DNA of 64,000 nt from Podarcis melisellensis. Lineage: Eukaryota. The stretch lies in assembly GCA_964234715.1 (NCBI GenBank), contig OZ174275.1. One strand, given 5' to 3'. Each line of letters starts with the position of its first letter. Position 1 is the first letter of the stretch. Below are positions 14,734-48,601 of this stretch, one piece after another. The translations under genes were made by a program, and so were the position numbers. The notes under the pieces were generated by a model. The model ran no database searches. It saw only the letters and a list, made by a program, of their open reading frames with translations, and was not told the origin of the DNA.

Positions 14734-15203
14734 CTGTAAATGACAACAACAAAAGGCGAAAGGAACAATTATGACTTCTGCCAAATTTGCCATTCGCTGA
14801 CGCTCCCTAAATTGGCTGATATCATACTGGTAACCATTCATTACATTACTAGTTAATTTTACGAAACGACATATTTTTTTATAACTTCCCGCAGATGAAA
14901 ACACGCTAGCAAACAAATTTCTGCCACTGCCCTTGCCTTCAGCCTTGTTGAATGCCCTCCAGATGCTTTGGACTAGAACTTCCATTAGCCCCAGGCAATG
15001 TGGGAAACCAATGTGCTGGTTTTGACCTGTGAAGCCTCATGCAGCTCACTCTCAAAGACCACCTGTCCCCACATGAACCAAGTCAAGACTGTGTTCATCA
15101 CCTGAGGCCCTTCTCCATGTGCACCCACTGAGAGAGGTGCAGAGGGTGGAAACAAAAAAATTCCTTCCAGTAGCACCTTAAAGACCAACTAAGTTAGTTC
15201 TTG

Positions 15204-15241
15204 GTATGAGCTTTCGTGTGCATGCACACTTCTTCAGATAC
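15204..15241 (-). ncRNA. Minimal type I hammerhead ribozyme motif (intact core; sense to INSIG2 pre-mRNA)
   Basis: Exact reverse complement of 15598-15635. Confidence 0.8.
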
Positions 15242-15420
15242 ACTGAAACAGAAGTCACCAGACCCTTCTATATAGTGAGAAGGTGGGGAGGGTATTACTC
15301 AGAAGGGTGGTGGGAATGGGTGATTGGCAGATAGCTGTGATGAGCCTGTTGACGACTCTTAACGACTGCAATAGGTCTTACAGGAAAAAGCAAGGGGTGA
15401 GAAGGTGAAAAATGGCTTTG

Positions 15421-15522
15421 TCATGTATAATGAGATAAGAATCCAATGTCTTTGTTCAGACCAGGTCTCTCCATGGTTTTAAGTTTGGTAATAAGTTGCA
15501 ATTCAGCAGCTTCTCTTTCCAT
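15421..15522 (-). pseudogene. Remnant C-terminus of a Penelope GIY-YIG endonuclease
   Basis: RE..E..LI.K..T...PGLN pattern typical of GIY-YIG domain ends; 5' truncated at the inversion junction. Confidence 0.7.
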
Positions 15523-15597
15523 TCCCACCACCCTTCTGAGTAATACCCCTGCCCACCTTCTCACTATATAGAAGGGTCTGGTAACTTCTGTTTCAGT

Positions 15598-15635
15598 GTA
15601 TCTGAAGAAGTGTGCATGCACACGAAAGCTCATAC
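15598..15635 (+). ncRNA. Minimal type I hammerhead ribozyme motif (intact core)
   Basis: GTAT-CTGAAGA-A-GTGTG(CATG)CACAC-GAAA-GCTC-ATAC: stem I GTAT/ATAC, CUGANGA and GAAA core, stem II, palindromic AGCT stem III, predicted cleavage after C15631. Confidence 0.8.
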
Positions 15636-15979
15636 CAAGAACTAACTTAGTTGGTCTTTAAGGTGCTACTGGAAGGAATTTTTTTGTTTTGACTATGGCA
15701 GACCAACACGGCTACCTATCTGTAACTGGAAGGGTGGAAACATGAAAGCAAGCCTTTTGACTGACAGCATCCTACTTGTGAAACTCTCCCCCAGAAGGCA
15801 TGCCTGGCACCACCACTATGTATTTTCAGGCACCAGACAAAAACATCTCTTTGAACCCAGGCTTTAGCCCCTTAATTTGGAGAGTATCAGCTATCTGTGG
15901 CCTCTTTTAGTGGGGTGGGGTGTTTGAGACCTATATAGGGATGTGTTTTTAGGTTCTCATTCTGTTTGGGTTCCTAATA

Positions 15980-20966: not shown

Positions 20967-22348
20967 CTGGTGTTGCTGTGTGCCTCTCCTCTCCCCACAA
21001 AAACATCATTCAGTAAAGGGACCTTTAAAGGTGTTCTCAATTTCTGAAACAGGTTTTATTAAGACACAAAGTGCTACAGTCAGGTGAGCTCAAGGGGTGC
21101 TTGCACAACAGTTCTTCACACACTTAGCCCCGCGCCAGAAGAGCAGAACATGCAGAGAAAATGACTAAGGTACGCTTTGAAATCAGTAACCTGGCTGGGC
21201 AAACTTGCGTAACTCCAAAGCTGGTCCTCTGTGTGGTAGAAGAGAAAAAGGGAGCCTTTCAGCGAGTGTGCATGTATACCTGAAGCATTTCATAGGAATA
21301 GGAGAGCTGTCTTCCCAGATCAGACTAAAGAGATATCAATTCAAACATCCTATTTCCGACAGGAGCCAGGTAGGTGCTGACAAGCAGGACAGGAAACGAA
21401 ACAGTCAACCCAACCCTTTGGTGCTCAGAATTATTATGTTATTATTGCTTATTTCATCTATGAGTCGCTTCCCACGAGGCATCCCAAAGTGATTCACAGC
21501 ATAATAAAAACTTATATAAAATGGCTACATAGATAAAAACCAAATGAACACATATATTTTAAAACAACAGCAGCACGTGGAAGTTTTAAATCTGATACAG
21601 AGGTAAAGATCTCTATTTTGAAGGCTTGCTGAAACAGGAATGTCTTTAGCACTCACTGAATGACAACAGGGGAGTTGCCTCTCTGATATGTAGCAGACAT
21701 AGATATGTTCCAAAGGGGAGATGCTACCACCCTAATTCTGGCCCAGTTCTGAAATGAGCCTCTTTGATAGAGTGGTACCTGCAAGATGCCCTCCATGGAA
21801 GGGCACAGTGATCAGTTGGTTACGTAGGGGATGACTCAATGTTTAAGTTATCCTTGTTTAGATAGCATCGTTCAGAAAACAGAACTCGCTGTGCAGGTGG
21901 TGTCTTTAGCTCCATTGTGAGGTGTGCTGCATGTACAGGCAGACCTTTCAAGTTTTTGCAGAGTTTCCAAGCTTAACTCCATTCAATGGTTTGCTTTGCT
22001 CGGAGAAGCAGAAGTCACCCACAGAAGCTTCAGCCAAGCCACACAATCAACTCTTACTCTGAACTCACAACCTAAGCCTTCAAAAAGCATTTCTTCTTGT
22101 GCCCTTTTCTACATCTTGCCCCCAGTGTCTTAGCCATCTGCCCTCCCTCAAGGCTTTTCATCCAACTCACCACAAACTCTTCAAAATCCAAAATATTGCC
22201 ACCAAAAGCTGGACCACTGAAAGCATGGGTGCTGTGTTGACAATTGATGCATTCTTTCAGAACCTGCACACTAGTTGTGGGCAAAGATCCACCACCACCT
22301 ATTGCTTCCCACCTGCGTATCTGGTGCAAAGGGATCCCAAAGCATTCC

Positions 22349-22959: not shown

Positions 22960-23903
22960 CTGTACAGAACCTTGCTAGACTACCTTTGTGGAAGGGGGTT
23001 GAAAAGTGATTGCAACTTCCTTATTTTTTATTTTTTACTATTCTCAGTTGGCAATTTGTTGGGTGCAGAAGTGCAGGCCAGCAGCAGTAGTCCACACCTG
23101 CAGGCAGTTCTGTGTGCTCCGAGAATCTGCTGAATAAGAGGTGGCGTAGAAGAAACACACAGTCTCTTGCTGCTACATCTCCACTTGCTTAAGAATAAGC
23201 GCTATCAAAAGAGGCAAACGGTTGGCAGCTTCAGAATGTGCAAAACAACGCTTCTGGGGGAGGGTTTTCCCCTCCCTTTAACGTTCCAGGTGACTAAGCT
23301 GTCAGTCAAAATACTTGTTATACACGAATGTGAGACCGGATCCATGTAGAACAAGATATTTGATTGACAGGTTGGAAAAAGAGGTGTCTGAAAAAGGAAT
23401 TCTGCCAGTCTGATCCAGAGGGTGTGTAGGAGAGCTGGTGAGGAGTGTGGAATTTTCTTGAGTACAGTACTTGATGTAGAAGGCATAGAAGTATGCCTTA
23501 GTTATGTGATCATATGGGTGGTTTTTGCTTTGTTTTGAAGGCTGATTTCCCCACTTCCAACTCTGCAATTTATGCAGCCTAAGCTTTCCTTTGGTCCAGA
23601 ATGACCTTGTCATAACATTCTTTGCTCTGGTGACCATCAGATCTCACTTTTGGTTAATTGCCATCTCTGTGCAGACTTCCTACAGTAGTTCCCTATCATT
23701 TGCAGTTCTCTTCACAGTTCAACAGTCAAGTTGCCTACTGATCTAGGCAACTGCAGGTACATTACAGTGTTTTGCTACAAAGCAGGAAATAGAGTTTTCA
23801 GACTCTACTATTGGGTTTTGGAAGGTCCTCTAATGTTTGAAACCTGCGTCCAGAACCTTGTTCTGGGTTTGTAGTCAAGACATCAAGCACAGTTCTAAGA
23901 CCA

Positions 23904-24124
23904 AATAAAAAAAAAATCCTTCCAGTAGCACCTTAGAGACCAACTATGTTTGTTATTGGTATGAGCTTTCATGTGCATGTACACTTCTTGTATCTAAAGA
24001 AGTGTGCATGCACACGAAAGCTCATACCAATAACAAACGTAGTTGGTCTTTAAGGTGCTACTCGAAGGAATTTTTTCATTTTGTTTTGACTACGGCAGAC
24101 CAACACAGCTACCTACCTGTAACT
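23904..24124. mobile_element. Penelope-like fold-back insertion B (older, diverged), in INSIG2 intron 1
   Basis: Same pLTR sequence in inverted arms meeting at 23989/23990; imperfect 13-bp TSD AGTTCTAAGACCA (23891-23903) / AGTTCTGGGACCA (24125-24137). Confidence 0.85.
23990..24027 (+). ncRNA. Degenerate hammerhead motif (core CTAAAGA)
   Basis: Identical to the copy A motif except G-to-A in the CUGANGA box. Confidence 0.65.
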
Positions 24125-27100
24125 AGTTCTGGGACCATGCGTCAATGACATAAATCAGTGGGCAATGCCTTGGTCTGACGGCACTGTCCCCAATATAGAT
24201 AGAAAAAGACCACAAAACAGCTATAAAATACAAAGTTTTTTTAAAAGATCCAAGGGCAGCTACATCAGTCCACCCAAAAAATTAAAACACCAAATCAGTT
24301 AAAACTAATTCAAATATGTTTTCAAGGCAGCTTGCAGGCCAGAGGCCTGTATAAATAAAAATGTTTTTGCCTGCTCCTCCTAAACTGAAAGCTAAGCCAA
24401 GTGTTCATTCCCCACCAACAATTTTTTGCAAATCCCCTAAAGCAGACATGACAAGGCTGTCAGTCATTTTTCACTTCTTTTACATATAAAATGGAACGGT
24501 CTTACATTTGACGGGGGATAGGGGACACAATAATGTATTTACAACAGTTCAAGAGATTTCTATGTGAAGACTAGTGTCCAGACAAGACCTTTTGTGGCTA
24601 TATGTGGGGTCCTGTTTTCTGTGATGCCCACCTCCTTACCAACTCTCAACTTGCCACTGTGCTAGGTATAATCACCCTCACATAAGAGCTATCTTCTGAT
24701 CTGGTCCTCTCCATAATGCCAGCAAGAGGTATTCTTCTATTTTGTGTGAGTAGCCTACATGCCAGGGCCCTATATAAAAGCAGGCCATCAGATAACGGAA
24801 TGTGATGCAGAGGAAGAGCTCTCATCACAGAGAATGGCTGGCTAAGCAGCAGCACATACGGCACCATGAAAGTGCAACTAGTAAAGGGTGCAGAGCAAGG
24901 AGGGAAAAGAGGGCTTGGGTGCACTTGCAGAGATCCTCTCCACATGCATATGGAAGGTTTTATGGACCAGGGAAGGGCAAATTTGTCTATGTCCTGCCTA
25001 TTTCATTCACAAACTCATTCCTGCTTTAAAATGCTATTTGCTTTTAAACAATCTGCCAAACGTATTTGTATTAACTTAACATATTTTATCTCACTGTGTG
25101 CATTTCTAAACATGTTTTATCCTAAAATAACTCAATTGGTTTGTTGTTGCTGAGCCAAGAACTACAACACAAAATTTGGAGAAATACAAACTCCAAAGGA
25201 TAATTAGTCCAAGCTGCAAGGAAATATAGACCAGGCTAGTTCACACTGGAATTCACAGAAACTGAATTGTAGCTGCACCCCGAGATACCTTTAATTTATA
25301 AATCACTTTCTCAAAAATGAGACTAAAGGCAACTCAACTATTAACTATTACAATACTTAACTATATTAACCCTTCTTGAGCAATGCACTAGTATCGCACA
25401 AATTTATGGTTGAGTAGCACATAAAGCAAGGTAAGAAAAGATCTCCTGCATTGAAGCAACTCTTGCAAAGCTCCCTTGCGAAGGCATTGCACCATCAGTG
25501 GCCTTGAAAAACGAAGGCATTTTCAAAATAAATACTCAGTCTGGAATGCAGAATACTATAGTACATGTTTACAAATTATTCCTTGGCACAAAACTGGAAG
25601 CAAGAAGAATTACCAATGAAAGAAGAATGGAGGATGAAATTGATGGGACTATGCAGAATTAGATAAACTAACAGGAAGGATTTGAAACCTGCAGGACCAG
25701 AGATTCTCAGAAGACTGGAGTAAATTTATGGATTATTTGAAAAGTAATTGTGATGAACAGATTACGCTAGTAGGTTTGCAAGAAGTTTTGTAAGGTGAAT
25801 TATTTGAAACATTGCAAAAAAGATAATGAGGAGAATTATTAGTTAAAGATAATTAAAGGTAATATGAAATTAAGAAATGCATAATAAGGGATAAGAACGG
25901 AAAATCATCAGAGGTCTTGACGGAAGTCCAAAAAATATTGTATAAGGTGTGAAGTTCTCTTGTATGAATGTTAATTAAAATGATAAAAACTAATAAAAAA
26001 TACATTAAAAAACCCAAACTATTCCAAATTATTCTGAAACGATGGGGAGCAAATATCCTAAATGACAATATATCTATATAGCAGATTTCCTATTGATTTT
26101 AAATGAAATGATTTTAAATTGCATTCTGTATGAACAACACACAAACCTCCTTTGTACAGTACCACAATAACTAGACTCACAAATATGAGTCCGCTTATTT
26201 TTGTTTGGCTTGTTATTTCAACCATTATTTGTGGCTGCCATGCCAGGAAGCACTATGCAGGGTGTTTTCTCTTCCTGGTGAGGTTTCCTAGGGCCTTTGG
26301 GAAGGAGCCTAGTGACTATCTTGTTCTCAGTGTACATTACAGGGGCACTGCAAGCAGATTTAGTGGATCCCATTTATAGAGCCATTGACCACATAATAGC
26401 AGATTCAAAACAAATGCACAGATCGACTTGCATGGACAGCTATCTGTAGGTAAACACTTCAATGAAATTGCCGTTACCATGCTTCTACAACCTCTCAAGA
26501 AAGTTGGTGATGGTACAACTCAGTTTGGTGAGTTCCAGAGAGGACACATAGCCATGTGGTAGCTTACCTCACCTAGTAAGGCATGGTTGGAACGCAAGAG
26601 ACATAGTGATGGACAAACAGAAAGTGCCTAACACTGCGGGCCAACCCAGAGACAGGAACAATCTACATACACGCAGGAAGGACTTGAAGATGTTTCTACT
26701 GCCGCTGGTGTTGCAGATTGACGTTGCTTTTAAATCCCTCAAGTTAATAAAAAAACCAACCAACTCTCCCCCACCTCACTTTATTCTTAGATGGAATTGA
26801 TAAGAACTTGATATAAACCTTGTACATAATTATATATCTTCAAGATCCTTGAAGAAATGACACTAGAATAAGTGTGTGTGTTTGGGCGGGGGGTGAAGAT
26901 ACCTTTTCAAAAAGCAGAAAATTTGTTGCATCAAAAAACCAGAAAACAAAGAAAGCGCCTGAATACTAAAACCCACACTACATCCACTCCCTGTTTTGCC
27001 TTCTGTGACGTAGTCAGTGACCTGATGAAGTGTATTGTCCTAAAGGGATGACGTCTACTGCAGGATGCAATCTGGTGGACATTGTGTTGTGGTTAGCTGG

Positions 27101-37262: not shown

Positions 37263-38194
37263 AAACACAGCATTTCCTAAGAAACTGAAGAACAGATAGC
37301 AGGATACATATGAATTGTGACTACCATCGCATGTACAAACCCCAACCGGCAGTGGTAGCACGCTGGATGCAGAGTAAATGTGTGTGTGTGTGTGTACACT
37401 GCCTTTGTTTGGATAATAATAGTATTGTTGTGCCTAAGCCCCAGCTCTTGACTCCTGGTTTGTGATTCTTGGCTTCTGACTCCTGGCTCCCATTCACCAC
37501 CCAGCACCGCCGGTAATTAAGGTTGTCAGCTGATTAACACTTTAGCTTTCAGCCAATTAAATAGCTTGTTAACTGACTAATATAGATGTTGCAATATATC
37601 AATAAAGGTGATATTTTGAGTATATTTCAATTAAGAGTTCTCTTGACCAAACCGCACACTAGAACGAATGATTCCCTGGCAAATCATTTTGTGCACACCG
37701 CCTGAATCATACTACTGCACCTAAATTGTCTACAAGGATGCAGTCAGAGCTGATTTGAAAATTCTCATTGTGAAACTTGCAATTAATGATTTAGTAGGCG
37801 AGAATGTGCATGTTTTGACCAGCTTGGAAGTGAGTCTCTCTTTCCCCCCTTTATTCTATCCATGGGTTGGATTTGAATCACTTATCAGCAAGCAGGTAGA
37901 TGATCAGGCATAAAAGACAGTTTTATGCAAAGTCAGGCCATTGGAGCTTGCAGGGCAATGTTGTCTACTAACAGTTGTGAGCATGCCATACATTTAAAAT
38001 ACATTCCTCCCCTACCAAAAAGCTACAGTTCCCAGCACTCTTAACAAACGACAGTTCTCGGGATTCTTTGGTAGCGATGCTTTCAATTAGGGCCGGATTT
38101 AGGTTTGATGAGGCCCTAAGCTACTGAAGGTAATGGGGCCCTTTATATGCCCAGCTGTCCAGTTTGTCAACAACAAATTGTCGCTGTTTTTTGT

Positions 38195-38467
38195 CAAAAC
38201 AAAAAAAAATTCCTTCCAGTAGCACCTTAAAGACCAACTAAGTTAGTTCTTGGTATGAGCTTTCGTGTGCATGCACACTTCTTCAGATACACTTTTTTCC
38301 TTCCAGTAGCACCTTAAAGACCAACTAAGTTAGTTCTTGGTATGAGCTTTCGTGTGCATGCACACGAAAGCTCATACCAAGAACTAACTTAGTTGGTCTT
38401 TAAGGTGCTACTGGAAGGAATTTTTTTTGTTTTGACTATGGCAGACCAACACGGCTACCTATCTGTA
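38195..38467. mobile_element. Penelope-like fold-back insertion C (two tandem minus pLTR pieces plus one plus piece), nested in a hAT element
   Basis: Same pLTR; perfect 12-bp TSD GCTGTTTTTTGT (38183-38194 / 38468-38479); the host copy at 17450-17900 shows the empty site. Confidence 0.9.
38253..38290 (-). ncRNA. Minimal type I hammerhead ribozyme motif (intact core)
   Basis: Identical to 15204-15241. Confidence 0.8.
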
Positions 38468-38823
38468 GCTGTTTTTTGTGTTGAATATATGCTGTATGGT
38501 AATTTATGGACCTAATAGCTACCTAAAGCCACTTGCGCACAACAAAATATGTATTTTATCAAAGCAGTTGTTGAACTGAAATACAATTAAGAAGAAGTAT
38601 ATTAATAATGAAATAATTATTAAACTACATCATAGGAGCCTACACAACACAAAACACTGTTGCTGTATGTAGGTTTTATTTTATTTGTTTTTTATCTTAT
38701 ATTTGGATATGTACATCCAGGTTGTTGTTTTTCCTTTAAATTGTTTGGGGGCCCCCAAAAGAGTGGGGCCCTAAGCTATAGCTTGTTTAGCTTATACATA
38801 AATCTGGCACTGCTTTCAATGTA

Positions 38824-47540: not shown

Positions 47541-47740
47541 NNNNNNNNNNNNNNNNNNNNNNNNNNNNNNNNNNNNNNNNNNNNNNNNNNNNNNNNNNNN
47601 NNNNNNNNNNNNNNNNNNNNNNNNNNNNNNNNNNNNNNNNNNNNNNNNNNNNNNNNNNNNNNNNNNNNNNNNNNNNNNNNNNNNNNNNNNNNNNNNNNNN
47701 NNNNNNNNNNNNNNNNNNNNNNNNNNNNNNNNNNNNNNNN
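47541..47740. other. Assembly gap (200 N)
   Basis: Run of N. Confidence 1.
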
Positions 47741-48469: not shown

Positions 48470-48601
48470 NNNNNNNNNNNNNNNNNNNNNNNNNNNNNNN
48501 NNNNNNNNNNNNNNNNNNNNNNNNNNNNNNNNNNNNNNNNNNNNNNNNNNNNNNNNNNNNNNNNNNNNNNNNNNNNNNNNNNNNNNNNNNNNNNNNNNNN
48601 N
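48470..48601. other. Assembly gap (132 N)
   Basis: Run of N. Confidence 1.

Follow-up and report, generated by a model that had tools for sequence, protein, structure and literature searches.

Insertions of Penelope-like retrotransposons (PLEs) have been drawn as units flanked by a target-site duplication (TSD), in which an inverted, 5'-truncated copy is combined with partial tandems and a tail of 30-40 bp is present at one end (PMC8557442). The layout of inverted and direct arms was also drawn by Arkhipova et al. 2013, and palindromes at the inverted junctions of PLEs were published as a regularity in the same paper (PMC3846280). Descriptions of PLE hammerheads include one bulged base 5' of helix II and, as helix III, the palindrome AGCU. 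Canonical descriptors are known to miss the minimal hammerheads of PLEs, and the published ones cleave poorly and only as dimers or with protein. In Penelope of Drosophila virilis, transcription starts about 120 nt upstream of helix I, and helix I marks the end of an intron. The transposition cycle of PLEs is poorly understood, notably the making of their inverted and tandem repeats.

For PAc (Poseidon_Ac, Anolis carolinensis), Frangieh et al. 2024 reported that the protein cleaves and extends both target strands, that its endonuclease prefers an ATT motif and that the protein promotes the folding of its own hammerhead, while hammerhead mutants left the insertion products unaltered in vitro (PMC11167929). 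Reverse transcription of PAc starts internally at two sites that enclose the tail (about nt 85-119 from the ATG); starts of the reverse transcriptase (RT) were located at 111-118, and the ATG begins at A9 of the CUGAGGA box of the hammerhead (PMC11167929).

The DNA analysed here, referred to as the window, is a stretch of 64,000 nucleotides from Podarcis melisellensis (assembly GCA_964234715.1, contig OZ174275.1). It contains three insertions of one family, designated A, B and C. Positions in the element follow the PAc convention, A9 of the CUGANGA box being +1. Insertion A is a very young, non-coding, dead-on-arrival pLTR/hammerhead terminal segment of a Penelope-like retrotransposon. It is a 273-bp unit (38195-38467) with the same 12-bp TSD on both sides, and is made up as follows.

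38183-38194: left copy of the TSD, GCTGTTTTTTGT, 12 bp (repeat search and paralogous empty sites).
38195-38293, minus strand: copy 1, antisense and without a tail, which extends from RT start site 1 (GTTTTG, about +84 to +86) to AGTGTATC (-13/-12).
38293-38296: T-run filler of about four T's between copies 1 and 2 (copy alignment).
38297-38358, minus strand: copy 2, the left palindrome arm, from GGAAGGAA (+71) to the helix II axis (+10).
38352-38365: the self-complementary 14-mer GTGTGCATGCACAC, comprising the helix II stem and the CAUG loop, at the palindrome axis (seven window matches).
38359-38467, plus strand: sense copy, which begins at the helix II axis (+10), crosses the T-run and a tail of about 36 nt and reaches RT start site 2 (+117).
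38468-38479: right copy of the TSD, GCTGTTTTTTGT (repeat search and paralogous empty sites).

The boundaries of insertion A and its TSD were fixed by paralogues of the host repeat that continue uninterrupted across the insertion point. In contigs from four runs, these empty sites join ~38182-38194 to 38472-38480 and skip 283-289 nt. A contig loose end at 38194 runs on as GTTGAATATATGC, and at the loose end at 38467 the other copies in the contigs finish with ...CTGTAACT and then enter unique flanks. The host repeat itself, which covers at least 38089-38680 of the window, is extremely abundant: its summed contig k-mer depth was 10^5-10^6 compared to ~45 in the unique flank, and position 38089 is the end of over 300 contigs. 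It bears GGGGCCCTAAGCTA-like motifs at 38109-38123 and 38764-38778 and may be a SINE or MITE. Elsewhere in the window, runs of N occupy 47541-47740 (200 nt) and 48470-48601 (132 nt).

Within the unit, copies 1 and 2 form a direct partial tandem (D1; 69 nt, spacing 87, 100% identical), and copy 1 shares 98-100% identity with the insertion C copies. The start of copy 2, GGAAGGAA, directly precedes the T-run and the ATT motif, the latter being contained in the terminus GGAA/TTTT of this copy. The T-run at 38293-38298 links copies 1 and 2 where the canonical sequence has A's. The filler T's differ from the canonical 5' continuation tgaaacag, as found in insertion C and in the contig loose ends at 38293, and the left edge of the filler is ambiguous by 1 nt, since 38293 fits either copy 1 or the filler. 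Non-templated addition, a target-derived T-run and slippage are candidate origins of the T-run. The first 62 nt of the sense copy constitute the right palindrome arm, and its tail of about 36 nt reads GACTATGGCAGACCAACACGGCTACCTATCTGTA.

The palindrome was recovered by an inverted-repeat search of the assembly sequence as two arms of 62 nt (38297-38358 and 38359-38420) that are 100% complementary with a spacer of 0 nt. Its axis, between 38358 and 38359, is the midpoint of the 14-mer, which has seven matches in the window compared to 0.19 expected. As single-stranded DNA, the palindrome region folds with -109.6 kcal/mol compared to -29 +/- 4 for shuffles (z = -20), which excludes chance. The DNA self-duplex of the 14-mer was calculated at -18.9 kcal/mol and its DNA hairpin at only -2.4; the helix II hairpin in RNA is also weak (-4 to -5.5 kcal/mol). 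The palindrome is seen in the assembly, and among the Logan contigs listed none crosses the axis or the interval 38297-38390. Contigs do not bridge insertion A because the unit sits in a second high-copy repeat, at which they break. When the locus was compared with Rfam, mir-559, mir-3910 and others scored 44-64 bits against gathering scores of 90-95, both strands giving like results; a microRNA or hairpin RNA gene family was rejected, as such sub-threshold scores are a generic effect of a perfect hairpin.

The sense strand of the element contains the motif GUAU-CUGAAGA-A-GUGUG(CAUG)CACAC-GAAA-GCUC-AUAC. Its sequence marks it as a minimal hammerhead of type I: one base is bulged 5' of helix II, the palindromic AGCU stands in for helix III, and the CUGANGA ... 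GAAA core, helices I and II and an NUH site for cleavage are present. Complete motifs were found with an in-house descriptor at 15598-15635 (plus), 15204-15241 (minus) and 38253-38290 (minus), and none were found in 50 shuffles. The last of these, in copy 1, is the sole complete minimal hammerhead within insertion A; both arms of the 124-bp palindrome are without the CUGAAGA box, so neither holds a complete one. Rfam returned no hammerhead for the whole window at the gathering score, nor for 38100-38550 at E<=10. This miss is expected for a minimal variant, and membership thus rests on the motif and the literature.

The other two insertions of the family have the following features.

23904-24124: insertion B, an older member of the family, likewise a fold-back (copy alignment).
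23904-23989, minus strand: tail-less arm of insertion B, ending at -3.
23990-24124, plus strand: tailed arm of insertion B, starting with GTATC (-10).
23891-23903 and 24125-24137: TSD of insertion B, AGTTCT[AA/GG]GACCA, 13 bp with 2 mismatches.
15154-15730: insertion C, a young, longer fold-back (copy alignment).
15150-15319 and 15519-15689: 170-nt arms of insertion C, the second followed by a plus tail to ~15727.
15143-15153 and 15731-15741: TSD of insertion C, AGGGTGGAAAC, 11 bp.

The arms of insertion B differ at 6 of ~75 positions (~8%), three of which are CpG transitions, and subfamily variants are common to both arms. The centre of insertion C consists of 199 nt of unique sequence between the arms. 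The 5' parts of these arms (15245-15319 compared to 15519-15594) show three differences, while the other ~95 nt are identical. The differences, which lie in the 5' 76 nt, include CCCTC-CCC compared to CCCCTGCCC and GGTGAC compared to GGTAAC. This pattern weakly suggests that the two arms may have been copied from two different RNA templates.

No further copies of the family were found in the window by a sensitive search with blastn and nhmmer; a match at 21266 was rejected as chance. Exact-pattern scans for further copies gave six chance matches without a hammerhead in metagenome contigs and none in viral contigs. No ORF for a PLE RT or GIY-YIG endonuclease of the family was found within the window, and the units hold short ORFs only. 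All three frames of the element close within ~50 nt. Antisense ORFs of 70 and 42 aa are present in insertion C at 15421-15633 (minus) and 15206-15334 (plus), from the ATG in GGTATGAGC (MSFRVHAHFFRYTETEV...); they traverse the hammerhead into upstream element sequence and are probably fortuitous. Insertions A, B and C are non-autonomous or truncated copies. In contigs of related species (runs X4 and X5, ~2% divergence by shared 31-mers), the element family, the host repeat and the classes of fold-back joint all recur, which indicates that the family is shared or active across the species group.

The layout of all three insertions is that of a PLE. Each is surrounded as a whole by its TSD, of 12 bp in A, 13 bp with two mismatches in B and 11 bp in C. 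Each is a head-to-head unit with an inverted, 5'-truncated copy beside a direct copy, insertion A having the partial tandem in addition. The inverted, tail-less arm lies on the left and the direct, tailed arm on the right, and a tail of ~36-40 nt (GACTATGGCAGACC...CTGTAACT) is found on the plus arm only. Alignment of the copies showed that the tail-less arms begin at +78 to +86 and the tailed arms at +117 to +123 in 3/3 insertions. These outer ends would correspond to the two RT start sites of PAc, by a match of position between different sequence families.

The inner ends were then located relative to the hammerhead. The 5' ends of the arms are at -13/-12 (copy 1 of A), +10 twice (the palindrome), -10 and -3 (B) and ~-89 and ~-288 (C), so that 5/7 arm ends of the three window insertions fall at or in the 40-nt hammerhead. 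The two inner ends of insertion C lie outside it, and the motif is thus not an obligatory stop. In contigs, the best-supported joints outside the host repeat, at least 13 further joint types, all link 38286-38292 (-12 to -6, the helix I edge) to 38351-38363 (+2 to +14, helix II); the sample is biased, being drawn from the best 15 of 409 joints and counting types rather than loci. The 13 types were found in all four runs (three species labels), with 0-2 additional letters and a microhomology of 0-5 nt. They show, for many independent fold-backs elsewhere, one arm that stops at the edge of helix I and another that stops inside helix II. The contig reference can reveal joints within and 3' of the hammerhead but not 5' of it, and the clustering of joints on the motif is suggestive and post hoc. 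Cleavage by the hammerhead was rejected as the cause of the arm ends, as the cleavage site (after GCUC, +24) is 11-37 nt from every end observed.

A first-pass annotation of the window had described a 124-bp perfect, spacer-less palindrome with its axis in the stem II 14-mer, within a unit at 38195-38467. The palindrome arms were recovered at 100%, and the boundaries coincide exactly with the insertion, as judged by the TSD on both sides and the paralogous empty sites. The same annotation had bounded the adjacent minus copy at stem I, and copy 1 (38195-38292/3) does end at AGTGTATC, the 5' edge of helix I. Its description of insertion B was likewise borne out, the plus arm running from GTATCT (23990) and the minus arm ending at 23989 within the CUGANGA box. 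The more general claim that junctions cluster on the ribozyme agrees with the 5/7 arm ends and the contig joint types (at least 13), but not with insertion C, whose ends are at ~-89 and ~-288.

In insertion C, TATATAG (15565-15571) precedes by 30 nt the A of TCAGTG (15595), and AGTGTATC begins with this A. The interval 15565-15602 of the window (reverse complement 15237-15274) thus has standard TATA/Inr spacing directly before helix I of the hammerhead. A pol II start is predicted at the first base of AGTGTATC. Since the ends at helix I (-13 to -6) coincide with this predicted TATA(-30)/Inr start, they are probably due to run-off at or near the 5' end of the RNA rather than to stalling on the ribozyme. 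A stall of the RT caused by the fold would be implausible at helix I, because by that point the RT has already copied and unwound the whole motif. The same stretch, ttctgtttcag/TG, also resembles a 3' splice site and could equally be an acceptor.

Priming on both target strands, followed by joining at the 14-mer, is considered the probable origin of insertion A, with some reserve. The first step of this pathway is shown by the anatomy, and we infer steps 2 to 4. In step 1, the endonuclease would cut both strands of the target about 12 bp apart, the target in this case being the T-run of another high-copy repeat, and each 3'-OH would prime reverse transcription. One strand would start at site 1 (the U-run/GUUUUG, ~+85) and give rise to the tail-less arm, and the other would start at site 2 (~+117) and give rise to the arm with the ~36-nt tail, the product being two antisense cDNAs facing each other. 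In step 2, a full-length cDNA would stop at AGUGUAUC, the RNA start corresponding to the predicted TATA(-30)/Inr site at the 5' edge of helix I. In step 3, the 3' end of a cDNA within the 14-mer would pair with the 14-mer of the opposite cDNA or with itself and then be extended on a DNA template, and the outcome would be a spacer-less palindrome with its axis at the centre of helix II. The stability of the 14-mer self-duplex means that two antisense cDNAs, or one folded cDNA, can anneal there; what would count in this step is the self-complementarity of helix II at the DNA level, not the catalysis or fold of the ribozyme. In step 4, the additional direct copy, with copy 1 ahead of copy 2, would represent the usual partial tandem of PLEs, and with the ATT motif in the GGAA/TTTT end the tandem may be the result of self-homing that builds pLTRs.

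The strongest mechanistic argument concerns the number of starts. Because each arm begins at an RT start site beside the TSD, two separate target-primed cDNAs are favoured over the snap-back of one cDNA. The three differences between the arms of insertion C weakly favour the same reading. Several observations weigh against the pathway. The sample consists of three loci and a biased list of contig joints. The ends of the second arm are scattered from +2 to +14 with little microhomology, and annealing at the 14-mer leaves this scatter unaccounted for; it does look like arrest of the RT in helix II. The start site of Drosophila virilis Penelope lies elsewhere, and the TATA/Inr of the lizard element is a motif prediction. 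The T filler at 38293-38296 is outside the reach of the proposed pathway.

The mechanism put forward in the first-pass annotation was that the folded hammerhead, or the helix II hairpin, stalls the RT and that the single stalled cDNA then snaps back or switches template. The exact position of the palindrome axis in the helix II 14-mer is in keeping with this, as are the many joints whose second arm begins at 38351-38363, across helix II, with 0-5 nt of microhomology, a pattern resembling arrest in a hairpin. Self-priming was moreover proposed for the palindromic junctions of PLEs, and the PAc protein promotes the folding of its hammerhead (PMC11167929). A snap-back should, however, run back through the tail, whereas in 3/3 insertions RT start site 1 forms the end of the tail-less arm. 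The fold cannot give the ends at -13 to -6, as the RT must unwind the entire motif before it comes to the 5' strand of helix I, and the helix II hairpin in RNA amounts to only -4 to -5.5 kcal/mol. In insertion C both hammerheads were traversed with no stop, and the insertion products of PAc hammerhead mutants were unchanged in vitro (PMC11167929). As an account of insertion A, stalling is thus regarded as unlikely. Parts of the earlier mechanism survive, namely that the units were made at or near the time of insertion with inner joints recurring in the hammerhead region (5/7 ends and the contigs), and that template switching or annealing at the 14-mer explains the spacer-less palindrome well (-18.9 kcal/mol). 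The scattered ends at +2 to +14 also leave some room for a genuine arrest of the RT within helix II. Its other parts fare less well: the ribozyme fold is an unlikely cause of RT stops at helix I, given the coinciding predicted start site and the motif already unwound, and the snap-back of one cDNA is disfavoured by arms that start at two RT start sites in 3/3 insertions. The ribozyme fold as a cause, at least of the helix I ends, is probably wrong.

A perfect palindrome could also have been produced secondarily, an alternative already raised in the first-pass annotation, by a deletion between two 14-mers of a longer fold-back like insertion C through slippage or microhomology-mediated repair. 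The 14-mer is its own reverse complement and is therefore a direct repeat in both arms of a fold-back. Insertion C has two exact direct copies of it, 394 nt apart, in a hairpin-forming structure, and a deletion between them would recreate 38340-38377 exactly. Long inverted repeats are deletion-prone, which also counts in favour of this explanation. It calls for a second event in an insertion that is extremely young, with 100% identity between the arms and between copies 1 and 2, and it offers no route to the asymmetric joints of insertion B and of the 13 contig types. Such joints in the hammerhead region imply that a process ending arms there at the time of insertion exists anyway, and a later deletion is considered quite unlikely. 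Collapse in the assembly or a chimeric long read, with a true locus that has a spacer or only one arm, is highly improbable. It would fit the Logan contigs listed, none of which crosses 38297-38390, and inverted structures of PLEs are known to trouble assemblies (PMC8557442). The palindrome nevertheless belongs to a unit whose TSDs are clean and whose outer ends are canonical, and analogous classes of junction are present in short-read contigs of four runs.

The layout of insertion A is one already described for PLEs, and the insertion, although very fresh, is an unremarkable case of a known type. From the perspective of the host, it is an ordinary intronic repeat, whose likely effects are only local instability of the palindrome and possibly a hairpin RNA. 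The possible link between the junction palindrome and helix II provides a modest new angle. Young, unmutated fold-back scars record the sites where opposing cDNAs joined, and should joints prove to be concentrated at the 5' end of the RNA and within helix II, priming on both strands, the two RT starts and the junction palindromes would come together in one model. It is conceivable, though rather doubtful, that helix II, ~25 nt from the 5' end of the transcript, serves as a programmed site of turn-around or annealing for the opposing cDNAs of both-strand TPRT. If so, programmed joining at helix II would account for the long-puzzling head-to-head pLTRs with junction palindromes across PLEs, and the conserved, unusually long helix II would gain a role at the DNA level that is independent of RNA cleavage.

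Comparable structures can arise in other ways. In L1 twin priming (Ostertag & Kazazian 2001), a second priming event on the other target strand reportedly produces an inverted 5' part within a single TSD-flanked insertion. The inverted and direct segments are then neighbouring parts of one RNA, whereas here the arms overlap and duplicate the same 62-170 nt; an inversion of the L1 twin-priming type was rejected on this basis. In snap-back self-priming, as in classical cDNA cloning, the palindrome axis is expected at the self-complementary 3' end of the cDNA. The second arm should then copy back to the start of the first, but here it ends at a separate RT start site. The animal non-LTR retrozymes (Cervera & de la Pena 2020; Li et al. 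2026 preprint) are similar to the present insertions in being non-autonomous, hammerhead-bearing derivatives of PLE pLTRs. They differ in that they are direct tandem repeats with at least two hammerheads and can release circular RNA; insertion A was not assigned to them, as 38195-38467 has only one complete hammerhead and an inverted layout.

Similarity to PAc extends to the position of the hammerhead at the pLTR-body junction, to two RT start sites ~35 nt apart (~+85 and ~+115-120 from A9), and to the use of both target strands and of AT- or T-rich targets. Apart from the hammerhead core, the PAc sequence is unrelated to that of the lizard element, and the ORF of PAc has its start at the hammerhead, whereas all frames of the lizard element close within ~50 nt. 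Frangieh et al. 2024 do not analyse where the opposing cDNAs join (PMC11167929). The described EN+ PLE insertions (Evgen'ev & Arkhipova 2005; PMC3846280; PMC8557442) have in common with the present ones the TSD, the inverted copy, the partial tandem, the tail at one end, the minimal hammerhead in the repeat and the palindrome at the inverted junction. The units in the window are by comparison non-coding fragments of 220-580 bp without an RT or endonuclease ORF. A link between the junction palindrome and helix II was not found stated in the searchable literature, and insertion A differs from the published PLEs in that its junction palindrome is identified with helix II of the hammerhead.
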